DNA of 64,000 nt from Magallana gigas (GCF_963853765.1 NC_088854.1:48112001-48176000); one strand, 5' to 3'; shown: positions 3,042 through 15,300, counted from the first letter of the stretch. The notes: generated by a model from the sequence alone, not told the origin. Numbers and translations are program-made.

Positions 3042-3872
3042 GGTAGTCCATCAATAATTAAGGCGAATTTAACCATTTTGATTAATCTATACTACATCAA
3101 ATACGTATTTTTTAAGTTGTTTAAGGCTGACATAAACCAAAATCGGACCTATGTATGTAGTCAATTAAATAAACTTTTTACACTTAAAACTGTTTTAAAG
3201 AGTTGTCTGCCCTTTAAGAAAATTAAAAAGATAATTTTTTGAAAATATGTATGGTAAATTATATATGAATTATTTTAGCATATTCAAAGAAAGGGAAAGC
3301 TTTTGCAACTTTTTACCAAGAGAAATGTGAGAAAATTACTTGTCCTAAAAAAATATATTTAAAAATGCATTTTCCCCATAGACTTAAGTATATATGATAA
3401 ATTTGTTAAAGGGACTTGGACACGATTTGAGATCAAATATTTTATTTTTATTTTTTATGTATAAAATGGTTTATTGGTGCATTTTAAATGATTGACCAAA
3501 ATATTAAATGTTAAAGTCAAGTTACAAGCGAGATACAGAGGTATTTTAAGAATTGATTGTTATGTAAACAAAACTCGAGTCTTATAGTTGTTTATAAAAA
3601 AGTAATGTAGAGAATTACCATTTCTTAGACAAAATCTCATGTAAATAACAATTTAAACTAATTCAATATCTTCTTAAATAATATTTTCAACAAAAGAAAG
3701 TTACACACATTTCAAGTCAAATCGTGTCCAAGTCCCTTTAATATTAATTTTTTCTTCAATTTCAGAGGTGAATATTTATTATTTAATAAACCCTTTAAAA
3801 TCACATTAAAATTTTGGTGATTAAACTTGCAATCTAATAGATATGAAATATGATAGTTGTGGATGGACAACC
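3042..3872. mobile_element. TTAA-flanked non-autonomous DNA transposon (Kolobok-like), outer element hosting a nested MITE
   Basis: ttaa|ggtagtccatc ... gatggacaacc|ttaa: 11-bp TIR with 1 mismatch, TTAA at 3038-3041 and 3873-3876. Confidence 0.55.
3410..3737. mobile_element. TTAA-flanked MITE (Kolobok-like), 328 bp, nested in 3042-3872
   Basis: Perfect 21-bp TIR agggacttggacacgatttga / tcaaatcgtgtccaagtccct. TTAA at 3406-3409 and 3738-3741. Confidence 0.85.
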
Positions 3873-4295
3873 TTAATTACACAGGTATATACTGCAGGGC
3901 CAAAACACCACGTGGTGAAAAAGACAATGGACCAAAAAAATGAAACCCATATTCATAGTCTTATATGCGTTTTTCTCTTTCTCATTTTTATAACGGTAAA
4001 CAATGCTATTGAATGACATTGAAAATCATTGCATGTGCTAGAGATTGAAACGAACTTGAAAATGTTGCGATTGCCCCCTAAAGTCGACCCAGAAGAACAA
4101 AAGAAAATAGCGAGATATGGGTGCATACAGAGCGTTTGTGTATTTGCAGTCACATGTGCCGTTATCCGTGCTCGTGAGTGATGATATTCTATTATTTATA
4201 AGGGCTTACTCCTGACGTTGTTACACAAGCATTTTTGGGTGAAAGCATGTATACTCAGTTATGATTTTTAGTGCTAGGTTAGTGGTTACATTTAA

Positions 4296-6622
4296 TAATA
4301 TGTAAACGGTGTGACCGTTGGACCGAGCGCAGATTTAACACAGTGCAGTTTGATTTTTGTAGAATAAAATTTATTTGAAATGCACACAGTAGGATCCGCC
4401 TTGTTGACTACTCAAAGCATTAGCCAAAGTTTAACAAAACGTCGCGTGCTCAGTCTACATTATGACGTCATGTTTCAAACGTAATACACGTTTTAACTTC
4501 GGAAATAGCCGAAGAGAGTTACGTTATTCCGAACTTTTTTTTCTTCTTTCATTGTTTATCAATTTAATTCATATAAATGCCGCAGTAATAAAATTGAATA
4601 CTTTATTCAGTATCTAAAAGACCAGTTCCTTGATGTTAATGTTTTTATTTTCCATCTGATAATTTGATAAGACATACATAGAACTAGTCGTGTTTTTTGA
4701 CTGAAGCACTATTGAAACTTAATCGGTGTCCTCTTTTATTTCTTTTGATTCAAATTACCTTCTATTTAAATACTGGAACATTTTAACTGAGTTTAGGGGC
4801 AACAAACATCGATAAGTACCGGTCAAACAATGATCGAATTAACTTTTAAAAAACAAAATGGCTGCCAATATGGCCGCGCCCATGGCTGGAAGAAAAATTT
4901 TTTGGCCTTAGTACCCCTGATTAAACTTTCAGTTTTCAATGATTTTCTTATATATACGTGTTACCATTAATCCTCGCTTCGCGAGGCGGGCTTCGCCCGC
5001 CTCTCGCTGCGCTCGGTATAATCTATATTTTCCTGGAAAGGTTCAAAGAATTGTGTGTTGGGGGGGGGGGGGGGGGGGGGGTCATATCAAGTGGGTATTA
5101 TCAGAGACATAAATATAAAATAACATTATGTTATTTATGTCTCTGGTACTATCTACCACACATAATATGTAAACGGTGTGACCGTTGGACCGAGCGCAGA
5201 TTTAACACAGCGCAGTTTGATTTTTGTAGAATAAAATTTATTTGAAACGCACACAGTAGGATCCGCCTGGTTGCCTACTCAAATGATTAGACAAAGTTTA
5301 ACTAAACGTCGCGTGCTCAGTCTACATTGTGACGTCATATTTCAGACGTAAAACGTTCAAGTTTTGTCTTCGGAAATAGCCGAAGAGTGTAACGTTATTC
5401 CGAACTATTTTTTATTTCTTCTTTCATTGTTTATCAATTTAATTCATATGAATGCCGCTGTAATAAAATTAAATACTTTATTCGGTATCTAAAAGATCAG
5501 TTTCTTGACCTTAATGTTTTTATTTTCCATCTGATAATTTGATAAGACATACATAGAACATGTCGTGTTTCTTGATTAAAGCACTATTGAAAATTATCTG
5601 GTTTCATTTTTAATTTCTTTTAATTCAAATTACCTTCTTTTGAAACACTTGAACTTATTTAATCGAGTTTAGGGGCAACAAACATCGATAAGTACTTATC
5701 AATCAATGATCGAAATAACTTTTTAAAAACAAAATGGCTGCCAATATGGCGGCGCCCATGGCTGGAAGAAATTTTTTTTGGCCTTAGTACCCCTGATTCA
5801 ACTTTCATTTTTCAATGATTTTTTTATATATACGTGTTACCATTAATCCTCGCTTCGCGAGGCGGGCTTCGCCCGCCTCTCGCTGCGCTCGGTAATATGT
5901 AAACGGTGTGACCGTTGGACCGAGCGCAGATATAACACAGTGCAGTTTGATTTTTGTAAATCAAAATTAATTTGAACGTGCACAGTAGGATCCGCCTGGT
6001 TGCCTACTCAAATCATTAGCTAAAGTTTAAGTAAACGTCGCGTGCTCAGTCTACATTATGACGTCATGTTTCAGACGTAAAACGTACACGTTTTGTCTTC
6101 GGAAATAGCCGAAGAGAGTAACGTTATTCCGAACTTTTTTAAAATTTCTTCTTTCATTGTTTATCAATTTAATTCATATATATAACGCGGTAATAAAATC
6201 GAATACTTTATTCAGTATCTAAAAGTTCAGTTCTTGATGGTAATGTTTTTATTTTCCATCTGATAATTTGATAAGATATACATAGAACTAGTCGTGTTTC
6301 TTGATTGAAGCACTTTTGAAGCTTATCTGGTGTCCTCTTTTATTTCTTTTAATTCAAATTACCTATTATTGAAACACTAGAAAATTTTAATCTAGATTAG
6401 GGGCAATAAACATCGTTAAGTACCAGTCAATCAATGATCGAACTAACTTTTTAAAAACAAAATGGCTCCCAATATGGCGGCGCCCAGGGCTGGAAGAAAA
6501 TTTTTTTGGCCTTAGTACCCCTGATTCAACTTTCATTTTTCACTGATTTTCTTATATATACGTGTTACCATTAATCCTCGCTTCGCGAGGCGGGCTTCGC
6601 CCGCCTCTCGCTGCGCTCGGTA
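4296..6622 (-). mobile_element. Tandem array of three ~725-bp Helentron-type non-autonomous elements (HINE/DINE-1-like)
   Basis: Units are 4296-5016, 5163-5892 and 5893-6620. Each has an asymmetric 10-bp inverted repeat (ccgagcgcag near one end, ctgcgctcgg at the other terminus), a hairpin aacggt-gtg-accgtt outside the internal copy, and GC hairpins cctcgc-ttc-gcgagg and gaggcgggc-ttc-gcccgcctc. No coding capacity. Confidence 0.75.
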
Positions 6623-7310
6623 TTAAGTAAATCATACATCAAAGCTGTCCGGGAATCAATAAGTTTGTGCAATTATGAACGATTTTCTTTGCAGTTACTG
6701 TAATGTATGAAAGGTTTATAACGGTTAGTAAATGAAAGTAGAAATATTTACTTGTAAATTGAATTTATCAGATATCTCTCGGTTTTTCTTTTCCCATATA
6801 GTTTGGCATATGTCAAGGTTTGACTGTAACTGAATGTATGTCATCTTATCTTTACAGTACCATACGTTATGAAGCAGCTGAATTCCTAAGGACTGTTGCT
6901 CTGCTGGGAGGTCAAGAGAGCTGTACATAGTTTGACAATGCCTCATGGAGGAAAATGTAGATACTGGACACGAATTACCCTGGACACTGCATAACAAAAT
7001 TGTTTTTGATGATGATGAGCATCCTGTTTTTGCAGTTATATGATGATAAATAAATGTATCTCGCATATCTAATAGCTCTTTTTGATCTATGCATATTTTA
7101 ATCTATCAAAAGAGAACTAACCATCAATATGGCAGACTGATTAAAATCAACCCTTCCAACAGCCCTTTAATTCTGATTAAGAACATCTGAACAATTAGAT
7201 TAAGGAGCTAGTCGAAGGTTGCTTGTGGTGGTCTTTTCCTATCTGTGTAAACAGGATCAAAATATTGCTCTCCTTCTACAAAAAATCCTTTCACACCGCA
7301 AACCTTCATA

Positions 7311-7485
7311 CAGCAAAACTCATTTATAACGAAGTCACTGGGACCTGAGAAATTACTTTGTTATATCCGTAATTCGTTATAACCGTATAAAAAATTCATT
7401 AAATTTACATAGCTGGGGATCCAAGATGACTTCGCTATATCCGTGAATTCGCAATATCCGTGTTCTTAATAAACGAGTTTTACTG
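7311..7485. mobile_element. Tc1/mariner-type MITE, 175 bp
   Basis: (ta)cagcaaaactcatttataacgaa / ttcttaataaacgagttttactg(ta): imperfect TIR with TA on both sides. Confidence 0.7.
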
Positions 7486-7544
7486 TACATTGATCATAAG
7501 CAGAATATAGAGGTATCATTGGGATACGTATCACATATATCACA

Positions 7545-8271
7545 TAAGGGGTTTTGGAAAAGCTAAAAGTATTGCAGGTAAAGGTGTGTTAAACAAAACT
7601 AAAATATCGGCACCGGACACCTCGTCAAAGACAACTCATCGAATGCGACAACTCATCAAAACTCAAAAGTCAACTACCAGGTAATCAAAAGTAAAACTCG
7701 CTGACGCAACATGTCACAGAATGACAACTCATCGATATTACATGTATATACTCTGAAGTAAAAAATCTTTGAATACTTCTCAGATTATTTTTTCATACTC
7801 ACTTAAAACATGGCTGAAGGAGGTACCAATTTACCTTATTCCGTCGCAGATGAATACAAACAAATTGGCATACAATGGTTTTGCACACTTGTGCAATAGG
7901 AAAAAGAAAACTTATTTGAAATTCAAACTGAGCACTTGTTAGGGGACTCTAATTCGAAGTGGCCGCTCATAAAGGAAAACTCTGAAAAAAAAAAATACAA
8001 TTGTGTAAACCGTCGGGGAACGAATCAGAGATGGTAACTACATGTATTTAAATGATCTTGAGGGTAAATATTAATGTTTATGTGAATAAAAATTTTATTA
8101 ATAGGTTTTCTTTCACTTTCTATGACTGTCGAATGTGTTGTCGTATCCATGAGTCGTCTATTCCATGACTTGTCCTTTCTATGCGCTGTCCATTCTGTGT
8201 GTTGTTGCATCGTTGTCATCGATGATTTTTTTCGACAAGTCGTCTTTCTATGAGTTGTCATAGACCCCTTA
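7545..8271. repeat. Foldback-like element with inverted clusters of a GACAACTCAT motif
   Basis: GACAACTCAT at 7630, 7647 and 7723. Reverse complement or variants at 8133, 8149, 8165 and 8250. 8-bp terminal inverted pair TAAGGGGT (7545) / ACCCCTTA (8264). Confidence 0.4.
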
Positions 8272-9323: not shown

Positions 9324-12300
9324 CTATCTTCTGTATTTCTTCTCTATTTTTTCTACTAAGTTGGGCACATTTTTGATTTCAAAGTCCAACAGCATCTGGC
9401 CCATGGCTTTTCCCTTGAAAATAATACCAGTATTTTCAGACATTGTTAACTAGGTGGTTACAAAGCAGTCACTCTGAAGGTTGTAATATAAGCGTGTGAT
9501 ATATTTATTTTCCCTGTTGTAGATTGTTTAATCAACTGAACATGTTACTTGTAGCCAAATATATATACTGGTACATGTGTAACAAAAAGAAAATTTCCTA
9601 TAATCATGAGGTGATAGGAGAGGGTGTTCATATCATAAGAACTGCAGATGATTGTGCATTCACATTTTATCACAACATATGTAGCTAACTTACAGTGTAT
9701 TTGATTTTATATGCCTCTTTTTTAATCTTTTTTAAAAAAATATATTTCTATAGTGAGATATTTTTTAATGAGAGCCAGTACAATAAAAGGCTGGTGCTAT
9801 ACCTTTTCATAAACCGGTATTTTTAATCCATTTTCCATAAAAATGACTGTTTGCACTTAAACAGAACTATCTTCTATCCATACCTGAGGGTCACTCCTGA
9901 GAGAGGCGATTCCTCCGCCCCCTAGCACATCATGCAGCACAAAGTTCAACCCATACACTCCTGGTACATCATACCTTTAAAATTTAAGAGAAAGGTATTT
10001 TCAACATTTACTATTTCGTCAATAAAAAAGACAACCAAAAATACAATCAAAATATATATTAAAACTCTAGCTAGATATAATAAAGAAATAGTTGTATTAA
10101 TGAAATTTTATATTGGATATTTAATTGCAATACATGTTAATTTTCTATTTATAAGATATATTGTTTTTTAAAATAAATAATTTGGAGATGTGTGAAGAGA
10201 TCAAAGGGGTGGTAATTAGTATTAATTGACAATACTTCACTTACCCATGATCAATTATAACAGTTGTTGTAATTAACTCAGCAGGAGTGATAATTAAACC
10301 ATGAAACTGTGGAGAACTTAACAAGGGGGTCAAACAAACCTACCTGTGTCCCACTTCCTTTGATCTCAGTAGGATAATGACCTCATTTAAAGTCTCAAAA
10401 TTTACTTAATGAAGAAAAAGAGTAACTCCTGATGCATGGATGATATATAAGGGGGAACTTGCAGGGCATTTCATTACAACTCTCTTCTTCAAACCATTCA
10501 ATATAATACTATCAATATACTCAAAACCATGGATGTTAAGACCAGTGCACAACTCCTACAGAGACACCTGATTCATCACGAGAAGGCCAAGGCCCAGGTC
10601 AAACTCATAGGTAGGATTTTGTAAAGTTTTCTGATAATTAATTCTCATTTAAATTTGTAACTGAACACTATATCCTTCAGAAATAAAATATTAAGTATAA
10701 TACTAAAAGAAACAAAAATTAACAATGGTTTTATCATTTTTCAATGATTTACAAACTTTGTCAGGTTTTTTTTAGCCAACCTACATAATTGTAATCTAAA
10801 CAATCATACCTGTAATTATCAAATACAGAGCTTTGTTGAGGAAATCAGAAAGTTGCAAGCATTTTAAAGAATGAAGAGTATATGTCTTCTATGACTCAAC
10901 ACAAACTCTGTGATATGTCATTACCATAATCTGTATTTCAAAAAAAAGGATATGTAAATTATTTTAGATCTGCATGGTGTTGTTCTGATGAAAATAAAAG
11001 TATCTGCTTGGTATTTATTTTGCTTTTAATATTTCAGAGCGACAGATTAAGAGACAATATCGACTGGCAGTGCGCACTGTTCTCAAGGGTCACAAGGGAC
11101 AGTCCCTTCACTACATGGGAATCATGACCGTTCTACAGTCCGTCCGACACTTCTACCAGCGCTATTCCCACAGGAGTTGGCTGAACGTCCAGATGCTGGC
11201 CCGCATTATCATGCAGACCATGGACCCCTGCCGCATGCTCCCTCCCCTAGAGATCCCAGAGGACAACTTCCAGTGCGAGAGTGGTCAGTCAGAGAAGTAC
11301 CAGCATGCTCTAGTGGTGGCCCATTGTAACTTCTCCAGGGCCAGTTAGTGACATCCCAGTTGTTGCTACCTTGTGATATTGTGTTTGTGATATTCTAGTG
11401 ATTTTCATTGTGTGACAGTGTTTTATTCTGACATTGTGTGTCAAATAAGACTCAAATTTTTAAATGGCTTTCAAGAGTAAGAACCTCTTGATAGGCTAAA
11501 AAGATATCCAAACTTTCAACTGATGTTTTATTGTGTCCTTTTGTGTAAACAATGATATTATTTCATGTGCTCCTCTGTGCTGAACCATTTGTATATTCTA
11601 TTCAAAATGTGAAAGTGCTTACATGTTATAAAAACTAATAAATTATAACCATAATCAATTTTATAGTCTTCTTTATAAAAAAAAAAAGCAATAGAGAAAA
11701 ATTGATTTTGGTGACAAGATAAAACCAAAACCTAATATCCCAAATATGCAATCTAAAATGCCTAGTATATGTTATATGGGTCTTAAAGGGGCATGGTCAC
11801 GAAGTTCATCAAATTTTATTTTTCTAATTTCAGTGTTTACAATGCTATTTCGTTTAAAACATAAAAAAAACCATTTCCTGATATTTGTGACATTCATTTT
11901 AGGTCTAAGTCCCTTTTAATGCATTTTAATTGCATTCCAAGCATATCTAGAAATATCTACCAGTAGTAACTTCTTACTGTTGAAATATATACAAGCTTTT
12001 ATAAAATACCTCTGTATCTTATGGTGACTGGGTACACTCTTATTCTCAAAGAGATGGGAGAAGTAGCTTTCCACCGCCTCTGTAGTGAGAGCCTGTCTAA
12101 GATAGGGTAGTATATCAGGGTGTCTGGCAATCACACCTACAACACAAATACAATGGTCATTACACACTTATACATTAAACATATAACACTTTAAAGAAAT
12201 ATTTTTTCTTTTGAATAAATGCACGTCGCTCATGAAAGAACACAAATATTACTTGAGAGCCATTTCAATTACTGCATAAAACTGCTATCATGATTTCCAC

Positions 12301-15300
12301 CCTATCTTGATAATTAGTTTGTACAGATCAGTGTTTGTACCAATATATGAACTGTGATAATGAATTCCCCCTAATCTTGACAATACAGATGAGTTGATTA
12401 CCAATATTAGCACTGTTTCCCTTGTCTCCACTCCTGGTGTAGGCCAGTTCCTCCAGCCTGAAGGAGTAGTCTCCCCCTGGGAGGGGTGTCTCCACCACTC
12501 GGGAGGGAGGTGTGACATTCTGGGTCATGTACTCCGACATAGGGATGTCTGGGAACTGATACTGTTCTACATGTTCACCATTCATGTGGATGTCAACCTG
12601 TCGCATTTAAATAATTCATTATACAAGAAAATCACTACACGACTACATCTTTTTATGAAATCATATGCATGGAATGAATTATAACGGTAATTGATTATAT
12701 ATGTATCAAATTTTCTTCTTTAACACCATGCTCTGTTTCAGTTTAAAACAAACTCATTTAATTCTGATATTGTGGCAACCTTTTACTAAATCAAAATGGT
12801 TATATGTACGAAGAGAAGTTCCGGGGCATTTGCTGAAAGTCTCACAAACATGTTTACCTGGACATTGTTGCGTGGATACAGAAAGGAAAACATCTTCAGC
12901 ACTGGATTTCTGCAAACAAATAGAACATATTAATATAAATAAATGCACAAGTACACAAACCAAATCAACAGTCATACTGGACCAACAACAGATTAAGATT
13001 TATTTTATAAATATTCATATTCTCATATGAAATAATTCAAATTTAAGTAAGAAGAGGTAATTTTGAAAAAAAATAGTTCAACTTCACCAAATGTAAAATA
13101 CATGTGCAGCTAAATATATATACATGTATAAATATATATACCCATATAAAAATTTTTCTGACAGAGTTGCGATCTGGGTACTTACACTCTTGGGCGTCCA
13201 CCAATGATGTTTGTTAATCCTGGAGCTGTGTACGGAACATAGTTTGGATTTGTTAGATATGAATTATCAGCAGATGATTTTTCTACATGTAGTTTCAAAC
13301 AATATCAAAATTTTATACATTAGAAAAAGATTTAAGTTATTCAGGAATTCAAAAGATGAGATTAGATAAATGCAATTGCTGTGCACCAATGTTTAACTAA
13401 GAGGAAAACAACTTGTCATTTTTCTTAAAAACAATGCAATTTGTTTATTATTCAAACACTCTTGATAGGACTAGACCATTCAGCATCATGGGATGATGAA
13501 GAAATGTACGACATAACCCTTTCTTGCAATAATGAAAACCTCATATTAATACCTGGTTGGAACATTTGGCCTAATCCACATTAAAAAACCATGATCAGAA
13601 TACCGGTACACATGATGTCGGTGGGAGATACATACCCATCCCCGTTCCTGCAGGGGCAATTTCTTTGGCAAAAAACTCTAATGCCTTTTTGTCTTTGTGT
13701 TGAACTGCTAACCACATAACAGCATCCCTTACACCCTAATGACAAGGTTATGGATTACATTGGCATAAGATACATGTATATTCCACAGTTAATTAACTCT
13801 TTACCTCTCAATGCCATATTCATAAGATACATCTGTAGTTCGATCAAATGAGACAAATTGACAAACCTTTGGAACTCTACTATGTGGTCCATAGATATGT
13901 TCTGAGCCAAGCACCTCCAGGTTGACTTTCGTGAAATCACTCATATTTAATTGTGAAAAAACTCTTCTACATCTGAAATAAATACATGTACAAAGGTACA
14001 CTGTACTGTAACTATCAAAGTCTTCATTTTTTATTGATACATTGTACCTTTTTTGAACGTTCCTTAAATTTTTCTCTCTTACTGATTCCCCAGTATTTCA
14101 TACAAGTTAAGCTATATTTGTATATTATGTGTAGTTACACAGTTGTCCCAGGTCTAAATTTATGTCTCTTTTTTATAGTTTTCTTAATCAGTACAAATAC
14201 TTATCAGTAAAGAAGAATAAAAATGGATATAAGAAACGATTCTTGGTACTTTTGTTCATTCTAGTGAATGAATATTGTTTTGACACAGAGGCAATTGTGC
14301 ATATCAAAATATGGCTTATCTGCATCTTTGTAATTCCAGATTCTTACTGTCTTGAATGTTGTTAAAATAAATAACATCAATGATGATATGACAAAAATTG
14401 TTTTGAAACAGGGTTTCATCTTATTAATAACCAACCAGTATGCATTCATAAATCAAAGTACTGAAGTACTGACGGGAGTTGATTTTATCAATTATCATTT
14501 ATTACAAAATCAACTTATCTTGCATGGCAATTAGTTTCTAGTCTGTAATATGAATTTTAATTAGACTTTTCAGACAAGAATTTAGAGAAACCCCATATGA
14601 ATCATGTTGTGTAATATTTAAAGATAGATTTCAAACTATGTATTAGTAATCGAAACAATTCTAAAAATTGTATGGATCCAAGCACTATAGATATTGAACT
14701 CCAGTCTCGTTCAACCAGACGCTCAGCTGTCTCCTTTAATCTCCGACAAGCAAGAGAGCCTCTCTGATTGACGGAGATTTACGGAGACAGCCAAGCGTCT
14801 GGTTTAACAAGACTATATTTAACTCTGGCGTAGGCATACATGAGATTACATAAATATCTAAATTATTCGTATTATATAAAATCTTACTATTTTCAAAGTG
14901 TTTATAGATAACTTTCCTTGAAAAACAATGCTTCAGCATACATTACATCAAATTTTTCTATTATATTCAAGAACTAAAACTTGTCAGCAGTGATGATTTG
15001 TGCTTAGGTCCAAACACTGTTTCACTTTCAGTTTGCCAAAGTGACTGCATAGGAGAGTTGATTAAAATCAACTCCCAAAAAACCATAATTGTAAGGGTAC
15101 AGAATACAGACTACACTTGCCTTTTAAGGATTTCTTCAGCTGTTTTTTCTGCTTTAGCCTTGGAATTGACACCACCCACGCAAGCTACAGCAGTGGCTCT
15201 GAATCCACTGGGATATATGGTACAAACCTGATTAGTGTAAAAGCAATGTGTGTTATGGCACAGAATAGTTATAGAAATTAAATATTTGACAAATTAAGTT

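Follow-up and report, generated by a model that had tools for sequence, protein, structure and literature searches.

Protein-coding genes nested in the introns of other genes are a general metazoan phenomenon, and most of them lie on the strand opposite to that of the host. A gene of this kind is described here from a 64,000-nucleotide (nt) stretch of the Magallana gigas genome (GCF_963853765.1, NC_088854.1:48112001-48176000; the window, in which all coordinates are counted from the first letter). As in other nested antisense intronic genes, the whole unit is contained in a single intron of a host gene encoded on the other strand, and has splice sites of its own as well as a putative promoter; the host is an AtuA-like gene. 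The public entries LOC105329844, LOC128157419 and A0A8W8LCW8 hold the same protein, the same two-exon model and the same AtuA intron, and their coding model does not differ from ours. In its predicted shape, the 130-amino-acid (aa) product also resembles the ESCRT-III/Snf7 proteins (PF03357; PspA/Vipp1), with a long alpha1-alpha2 hairpin of about 40 + 43 residues followed by a further helix. Considering all the evidence presented below, this is very probably a genuine, annotated two-exon gene, antisense within the AtuA intron, which belongs to a mollusc protein family and encodes a soluble, basic hairpin protein.

Gene model, selection and host intron

Joining of the two coding exons (Table 1) produced a 393-nt frame, the spliced translation of which is the 130-aa protein. 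This frame was carried without interruption by four short Logan RNA contigs (L013-L016), one each from four runs, and in blastn searches of these contigs against the window two blocks were obtained, the first ending at 10610 and the second starting at 11036 or 11038. Because all four contigs carry the open reading frame (ORF) together with that junction, the splice from 10610 to 11038, which an earlier reading of the same DNA (the original prediction) had singled out for an RNA check, is real. The same reading had listed a TATA box, an initiator-like (Inr-like) TCATT 29 nt further on and an ACCATGG start, all of which were found where it had placed them, and had described a phase-1 GT-AG intron fusing two frames into one, in agreement with the 130-aa frame and the RNA junction. 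The coding-like GC bias that it had noted in exon 2 could be recognized both as an island of GC content of 0.48-0.56 across positions 11000-11400, versus 0.23-0.35 in the surroundings, and in the GC content by codon position of the spliced frame (0.58/0.34/0.68), which shows coding periodicity. It had also been correct that the mechanical ORF list holds only the 3' part of the gene (11070-11348).

The gene is under purifying selection. The orthologues of Saccostrea echinata and Ostrea edulis are exactly 393 nt long, with coding exons of 82 + 311 nt, and the coding part of exon 1 is likewise 82 nt in the C. angulata orthologue, the coding sequence of which has a single synonymous difference from the window. 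In the comparison with Saccostrea, the proportions of nonsynonymous and synonymous differences were 0.25 (pN) and 0.72 (pS), with a ratio of the corresponding substitution rates (dN/dS, or omega) of about 0.13; with Ostrea, omega was about 0.26 and dS was saturated. Overall, the dN/dS check that the original prediction had proposed gave values of about 0.13-0.28 across the oyster genera.

The antisense location within an AtuA intron was also confirmed, as the whole unit lies in one minus-strand host intron and occupies more than half of it. The dinucleotides CT at 9975-9976 and AC at 12008-12009 are consistent with a minus-strand GT-AG intron, which interrupts the AtuA ferredoxin-like domain of the host, and the neighboring host joint (12134 to 12400) was present in four runs, at a depth of 43-113 in the three contig runs. 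The same intron holds the gene in Saccostrea and Ostrea, which answers the question, raised with the original prediction, of whether the nesting is conserved: AtuA exons flank the orthologue on both sides, on the opposite strand, in S. echinata and O. edulis, and in the gene tables of C. angulata and S. echinata the nested gene lies on the opposite strand within a gene having the Pfam domains AtuA and AtuA_ferredoxin. Within the host intron, Crassostrea and Ostrea could be aligned only in 10213-10620 (promoter and exon 1) and 11017-11380 (exon 2).

Two adjectives of the original prediction, "hidden" and "orphan", have to be abandoned. The 130-aa protein is identical to XP_011429611.1 (Crassostrea gigas LOC105329844), to XP_052675922.1 (C. 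angulata LOC128157419) and to UniProt A0A8W8LCW8, and was therefore already present in RefSeq and UniProt, all the identical records bearing the name "uncharacterized protein"; it also proved to belong to a mollusc-wide multigene family. No papers were found in the literature for the LOC, XP and UniProt identifiers or for nested genes in oyster. Since public annotation already holds it, the single gene adds little. What is added here is the definition of the family (mollusc-wide, without a Pfam entry, with a fixed intron position and a conserved C-terminal motif), the conservation in three oyster genera of both the nesting in AtuA and a putative TATA-type promoter, and the antisense position of its relatives within other genes, which is much commoner than expected.

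Table 1. Features of the nested gene and of its host in the window
Feature	Position	Strand	Basis or remark
Upstream motif TTTGATCTCAGTAGGATAAT, candidate promoter-proximal element	10359-10378	+	About 95-115 nt upstream of the putative start site; near-invariant alignment block
Motif GAGTAACTCC	10420-10429	+	About 15 nt upstream of TATA; invariant alignment columns
TATA box TATATAAG	10444-10451	+	Direct sequence reading
Inr-like TCATT, putative start site A 10473	10471-10475	+	A lies 29 nt after the first T of TATA
Start context ACCATGG, ATG at 10529	10526-10532	+	Direct sequence reading
Exon 1, coding part (27 codons + first base of codon 28)	10529-10610	+	Sequence and spliced translation
Phase-1 GT-AG intron, 427 nt (GT 10611-10612, AG 11036-11037)	10611-11037	+	RNA contig junction 10610/11038
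Exon 2, coding part (102 full codons + stop TAG 11346-11348)	11038-11348	+	Sequence and spliced translation
3' untranslated region, putative end near 11660	11349-11660	+	RNA contig L013 reaches 11624; AATAAA at 11637-11642
Nested gene, whole span (both ends putative)	10473-11660	+	
Host intron of AtuA-like gene, containing the whole nested gene	~9975-12009	-	Host mRNA contigs join ~9970-9974 to ~12006-12010 (loose ends)
Host exon, AtuA ferredoxin-like domain positions 22-70	12010-12136	-	Pfam PF23544, E 1.7e-4
Next host exon upstream, start of AtuA ferredoxin-like domain	12402-12600	-	Pfam PF23544, E 2.4e-5

Two side observations concern the locus in other records. A second UniProt model, A0A8W8LCA1 (147 aa), has its ATG in 9932-9994 on the plus strand, opposite a host exon, and is joined by splicing to codon 5 of the nested gene; a mis-join, due to unstranded data, is the probable explanation. 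The C. angulata assembly contains a 4.3-kb insertion in the nested gene's intron (window position ~10930; C. angulata locus 3403-7715), and the intron there measures 4.7 kb.

A mollusc protein family and its predicted fold

A six-frame search of the M. gigas genome revealed two intact paralogous frames with about 28-30% identity, and the exon-2 profile built from these three copies added three further loci, giving at least six in 564 Mb with the nested gene included; the more distant copies retain the C-terminal motif. When this profile was scored against 1.84 billion representative proteins, 35 representative clusters were recovered at E<=1e-3, of which 17 reached E<=1e-10, and the full-length profile recovered 33 proteins at E<=1e-3. 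Every named match is a mollusc (Saccostrea, Ostrea, Crassostrea, Pinctada, Mizuhopecten, Pecten, Mytilus, Lottia and Haliotis), and no Pfam domain or described function is attached to any of the family matches. Pfam likewise gave nothing on either exon peptide of the window gene, and a scan of 21 members (E<=1) yielded only scattered weak TPR and coiled-coil matches, in one or two members each.

The members, which include Saccostrea LOC133196197, Ostrea LOC130055130, C. gigas LOC105344890 and LOC105345479, Mizuhopecten LOC110465479, Lottia LOTGIDRAFT_230035 and Haliotis LOC125382721, share with the window protein a length of about 113-153 aa, a layout of hairpin, linker and helix, a C-terminal motif and the position of a phase-1 intron. 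This sole intron interrupts the same Asp/Glu/Asn codon, downstream of the motif Q-x-x-L-L/I of the first helix, in each of the nine spliced members compared, which come from Saccostrea, Ostrea, C. angulata, Mizuhopecten, Pecten, Lottia and Haliotis. The motif reads Cys-x-hydrophobic-Ser/Thr/Tyr-Arg-x-x-end, its Arg being invariant in the 21 aligned members, and the window protein ends in C-N-F-S-R-A-S. Because members occur throughout the molluscs and oysters, scallops, limpet and abalone agree in the position of the intron, the family is, as judged from these comparisons, older than the bivalve-gastropod split. The paralogues differ from the window protein in sequence (21-33% identity) and in their host genes, and do not have its promoter motifs in common.

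Some members depart from the usual gene structure. The Mytilus galloprovincialis member (locus 10001-10399) is intronless, yet antisense-nested in a Sec7 ArfGEF gene, and could be a case of intron loss or a retrocopy. The chromosome-7 paralogue of M. gigas has a family-like first exon (1082-1184 of the locus) about 290 nt upstream of exon 2, and its annotated and RNA-derived proteins begin with another first exon, likewise family-like and located further upstream (with a 1135-nt intron in C. angulata), so that the first exon could be duplicated or alternative. Finally, a tandem pair of distant members, 5.9 kb apart, is located at C6:41358751-41364819 and matches the pair nested in the Saccostrea NVL-like gene.

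The 130-aa product is soluble and basic, with an isoelectric point (pI) of 9.96, and has no hydrophobic segment, signal peptide or membrane segment. The AlphaFold2 model, obtained with a 21-sequence family alignment, reached a mean predicted local distance difference test (pLDDT) score of 85 and consists of two predicted antiparallel helices (residues 3-43 and 47-89, pLDDT >90), a Pro/acidic linker and a C-terminal helix. The protein would be a non-enzymatic scaffold or adaptor of the coiled-coil type that works by contacts with other proteins, and the conserved C-terminal helix might pack back on the hairpin or serve as a docking motif.

The same model raised the possibility that the family is a very divergent, truncated ESCRT-III/Snf7 type, reduced to the alpha1-alpha2 hairpin and the C-terminal helix and either polymerizing on membranes or capping or regulating ESCRT-III filaments. 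The top Foldseek matches in the PDB are nearly all from the ESCRT-III superfamily (Snf7, Asgard ESCRT-IIIB, Vipp1, PspA and CHMP2A-CHMP3), with a probability of mostly 0.84-0.99 and a TM-score of about 0.6, and those among the Swiss-Prot models were similar (PspA, VIPP1, CHMP7, SNF7, CHMP1, VPS20 and CHMP6). By language-model features, the protein adjoins two Snf7 clusters at a score of 0.89, with 177-179 features in common, and a local G-x-K-G-x-A-L plus a basic stretch resembles the turn between helices 1 and 2 of CHMP4. The Foldseek matches, however, are found only at E 0.3-1.3, and the fold match to ESCRT-III is no better than that to unrelated hairpins. None of the members had a match to Pfam Snf7, which is absent from the 25 Pfam families with matches (E<=1) in most of the 21 members, and the family profile retrieved no ESCRT-III chain from the PDB sequences at E<=10. 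In profile-profile comparison, hhalign was negative with a single CHMP5, with a profile of mixed CHMPs and with each of three subfamily profiles: it gave 1.1% against CHMP4/5/2A combined and 0.2-0.4% against each singly, and aligned just the 10 columns of the CHMP4-like turn. The positive controls worked (CHMP4-CHMP5 99%, CHMP5-CHMP2 80%, CHMP4-CHMP2 64%), and homology to ESCRT-III was rejected as a candidate; we consider this origin improbable.

Other searches were equally unspecific: the exon-2 and full-length profiles found nothing relevant among PDB sequences, an atlas search by features with exon 2 alone was uninformative (best score 0.81), and an atlas search by shape returned generic hairpins only. 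As modeled, the product is a generic long helical hairpin, for which membership in ESCRT-III is unsupported and a distant functional resemblance is possible. While surveying these genes, we noticed that CHMP5 of M. gigas (C7:26967171-26967836) is a single uninterrupted frame of 221 codons, unlike the other ESCRT-III genes found, the coding sequences of which are divided into exons.

Nesting in unrelated host genes

The genomic context was fetched for nine distinct family loci, and in 7 of the 9 the member lies antisense within a larger, unrelated gene. The hosts are AtuA, BLTP1, a DEAD/Helicase_C/KH helicase, an NVL-like AAA ATPase (tandem pair), a CUB/LDLa gene in scallop, TMEM232 and a Sec7 ArfGEF. 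The Lottia member is located between two minus-strand CUB-type gene models, which may be one split gene, and the Haliotis member is the only one of the nine without an overlapping gene call. No matches were found by tblastx between the scallop and Lottia CUB-type host loci, and no AtuA exons were present near the locus of an unnamed family member (contig L021). With an assumed, not measured, intronic fraction of 35%, nesting of 7 of the 9 loci by chance would be unlikely.

Such a distribution would also be produced by a cassette that is, or until recently was, mobile or transposon-borne, the ORF being an accessory gene of a transposable element and its insertions explaining the antisense intronic copies. 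Apart from the 7 of 9 antisense locations in unrelated hosts, this idea draws on the active repeats in the vicinity, namely a polymorphic high-copy insertion at 10405/10406 and the 4.3-kb insertion in the C. angulata intron. It is nevertheless contradicted by the small number of loci (only six found in the 564-Mb genome) and by the lack of a transposase or any other Pfam domain. The promoter motifs of the nested gene are absent from the paralogues, which have no common flanks either, and the failure of the paralogues to share these motifs argues against a common cassette. Further points against it are that the orthologues of three genera occupy the same host intron, at a low dN/dS and with dS saturated, and that the intron position has not changed since the bivalve-gastropod split; we regard a transposon origin as very improbable.

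The gene itself being already known, the pattern of nesting at the level of the family may be the only new part. Our broadest interpretation is that of an ancient, mollusc-restricted hairpin family kept antisense in the introns of large unrelated hosts, locus after locus, which might also be a remote miniature offshoot of ESCRT-III; we propose it tentatively, as a doubtful extension of the reading as a genuine nested gene of a mollusc family. If true, the nesting of the family would indicate that residence in introns is linked, mechanistically or through selection, to the expression or duplication of these genes. Should the nesting hold genome-wide, the family would provide a natural system for asking why genes live inside genes, as well as a handle on a lineage-specific protein family.

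Probable promoter, transcription and comparison with known systems

The promoter was evaluated by alignment of the upstream region over Crassostrea, C. angulata, Saccostrea and Ostrea. Counted from the ATG, GATCTCAG is located at -167/-161/-174, AGTAAC at -108/-103/-114 and the TATA box at -85/-81/-89 in Crassostrea/Saccostrea/Ostrea, and CATTTCATTACAACT, at the Inr-like site, is identical in Saccostrea and partly retained in Ostrea. The bare motif is no rarer than chance, as 13 copies of the TATAWAAG octamer occur in the window versus 12.1 expected; it is because of its conservation in the three oyster genera that the TATA box counts for more than chance. From this conservation, the nested gene probably has its own promoter, as the original prediction had claimed. 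Indirect support for that claim comes from the TATA box, the Inr and the pair of upstream motifs, the positions of which correspond among the three genera; the start of the transcript is putative, since RNA contigs run past the TATA box. Transcription of the nested gene would be independent of that of the host and would begin about 29 nt downstream of the conserved TATA box, and expression would be low or restricted.

A separate RNA survey covered the region 10300-12700 in four other runs, comprising three RNA contig sets and one stranded polyadenylated (polyA) raw-read run, and its results count against the reading favored here. The joint from 10610 to 11038 was not seen in any of the four surveyed runs. 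The contigs of two runs span the whole proposed intron unspliced at a depth of 5-10, compared to 43-113 for the host exons, and those of the third run enter it from either side. Few stranded polyA read pairs fall on exon 2, and these are oriented like the host exons and therefore derive from host pre-mRNA in that run. In the contigs that do carry the spliced frame, the 5' ends extend beyond the putative start at 10473: two of them match the genome collinearly as far as 10180-10192, past the TATA box, and the other two (L014 and L016) switch at 10405/10406 into 293-368 nt of repeat. To these points must be added that no experiment or paper on the function of the protein was found in the literature, and that the predicted C-terminal helix (residues 105-129), which bears the family motif, reached a pLDDT of only 59-68.

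The nested gene is thus silent or near-silent in the four surveyed runs, in which only host pre-mRNA is visible. The original prediction had associated the TATA promoter with tissue-specific or inducible expression, and such expression would fit the lack of spliced reads in these runs. As for the 5' ends, the collinear extension upstream of the TATA box may be host pre-mRNA joined by the assembler; because an assembler can extend mRNA ends into host pre-mRNA of low coverage, the contigs do not decide for or against a start at 10473. The upstream part of L014 and L016 was rejected as a 5' exon: it has more than 40 near-full-length matches in the M. gigas genome and is a high-copy repeat, therefore a polymorphic insertion.

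Two observations on repeats in the locus can be recorded here. The polymorphic insertion was present in two individuals of the RNA runs and lies about 40 nt upstream of the TATA box. In addition, a short stretch at 11783-11825 had a much higher depth in both contig and raw-read runs, with reads of both strands and loose ends on both sides, and is probably a fragment of an abundant repeat.

The very low expression and the absence of spliced reads from the surveyed runs would also suit a plus-strand RNA that is merely a non-coding antisense transcript of the host intron, with the 130-codon frame an annotation artifact, but a frame whose length of exactly 393 nt is common to three genera although synonymous change is saturated, a pN well under pS, homologous proteins across Mollusca and a GC content by codon position with coding periodicity make this the most improbable of the explanations considered.

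With the locus thus read as a genuine nested gene, its comparison with known systems can be stated for the protein and for the gene. The protein is about 90 residues shorter than those of ESCRT-III and has no sequence or profile-profile similarity to them. The gene differs from nested antisense genes in general in that its nesting has been kept across three oyster genera, and in that most of its relatives are likewise nested, in unrelated hosts, which is unusual for a gene family.

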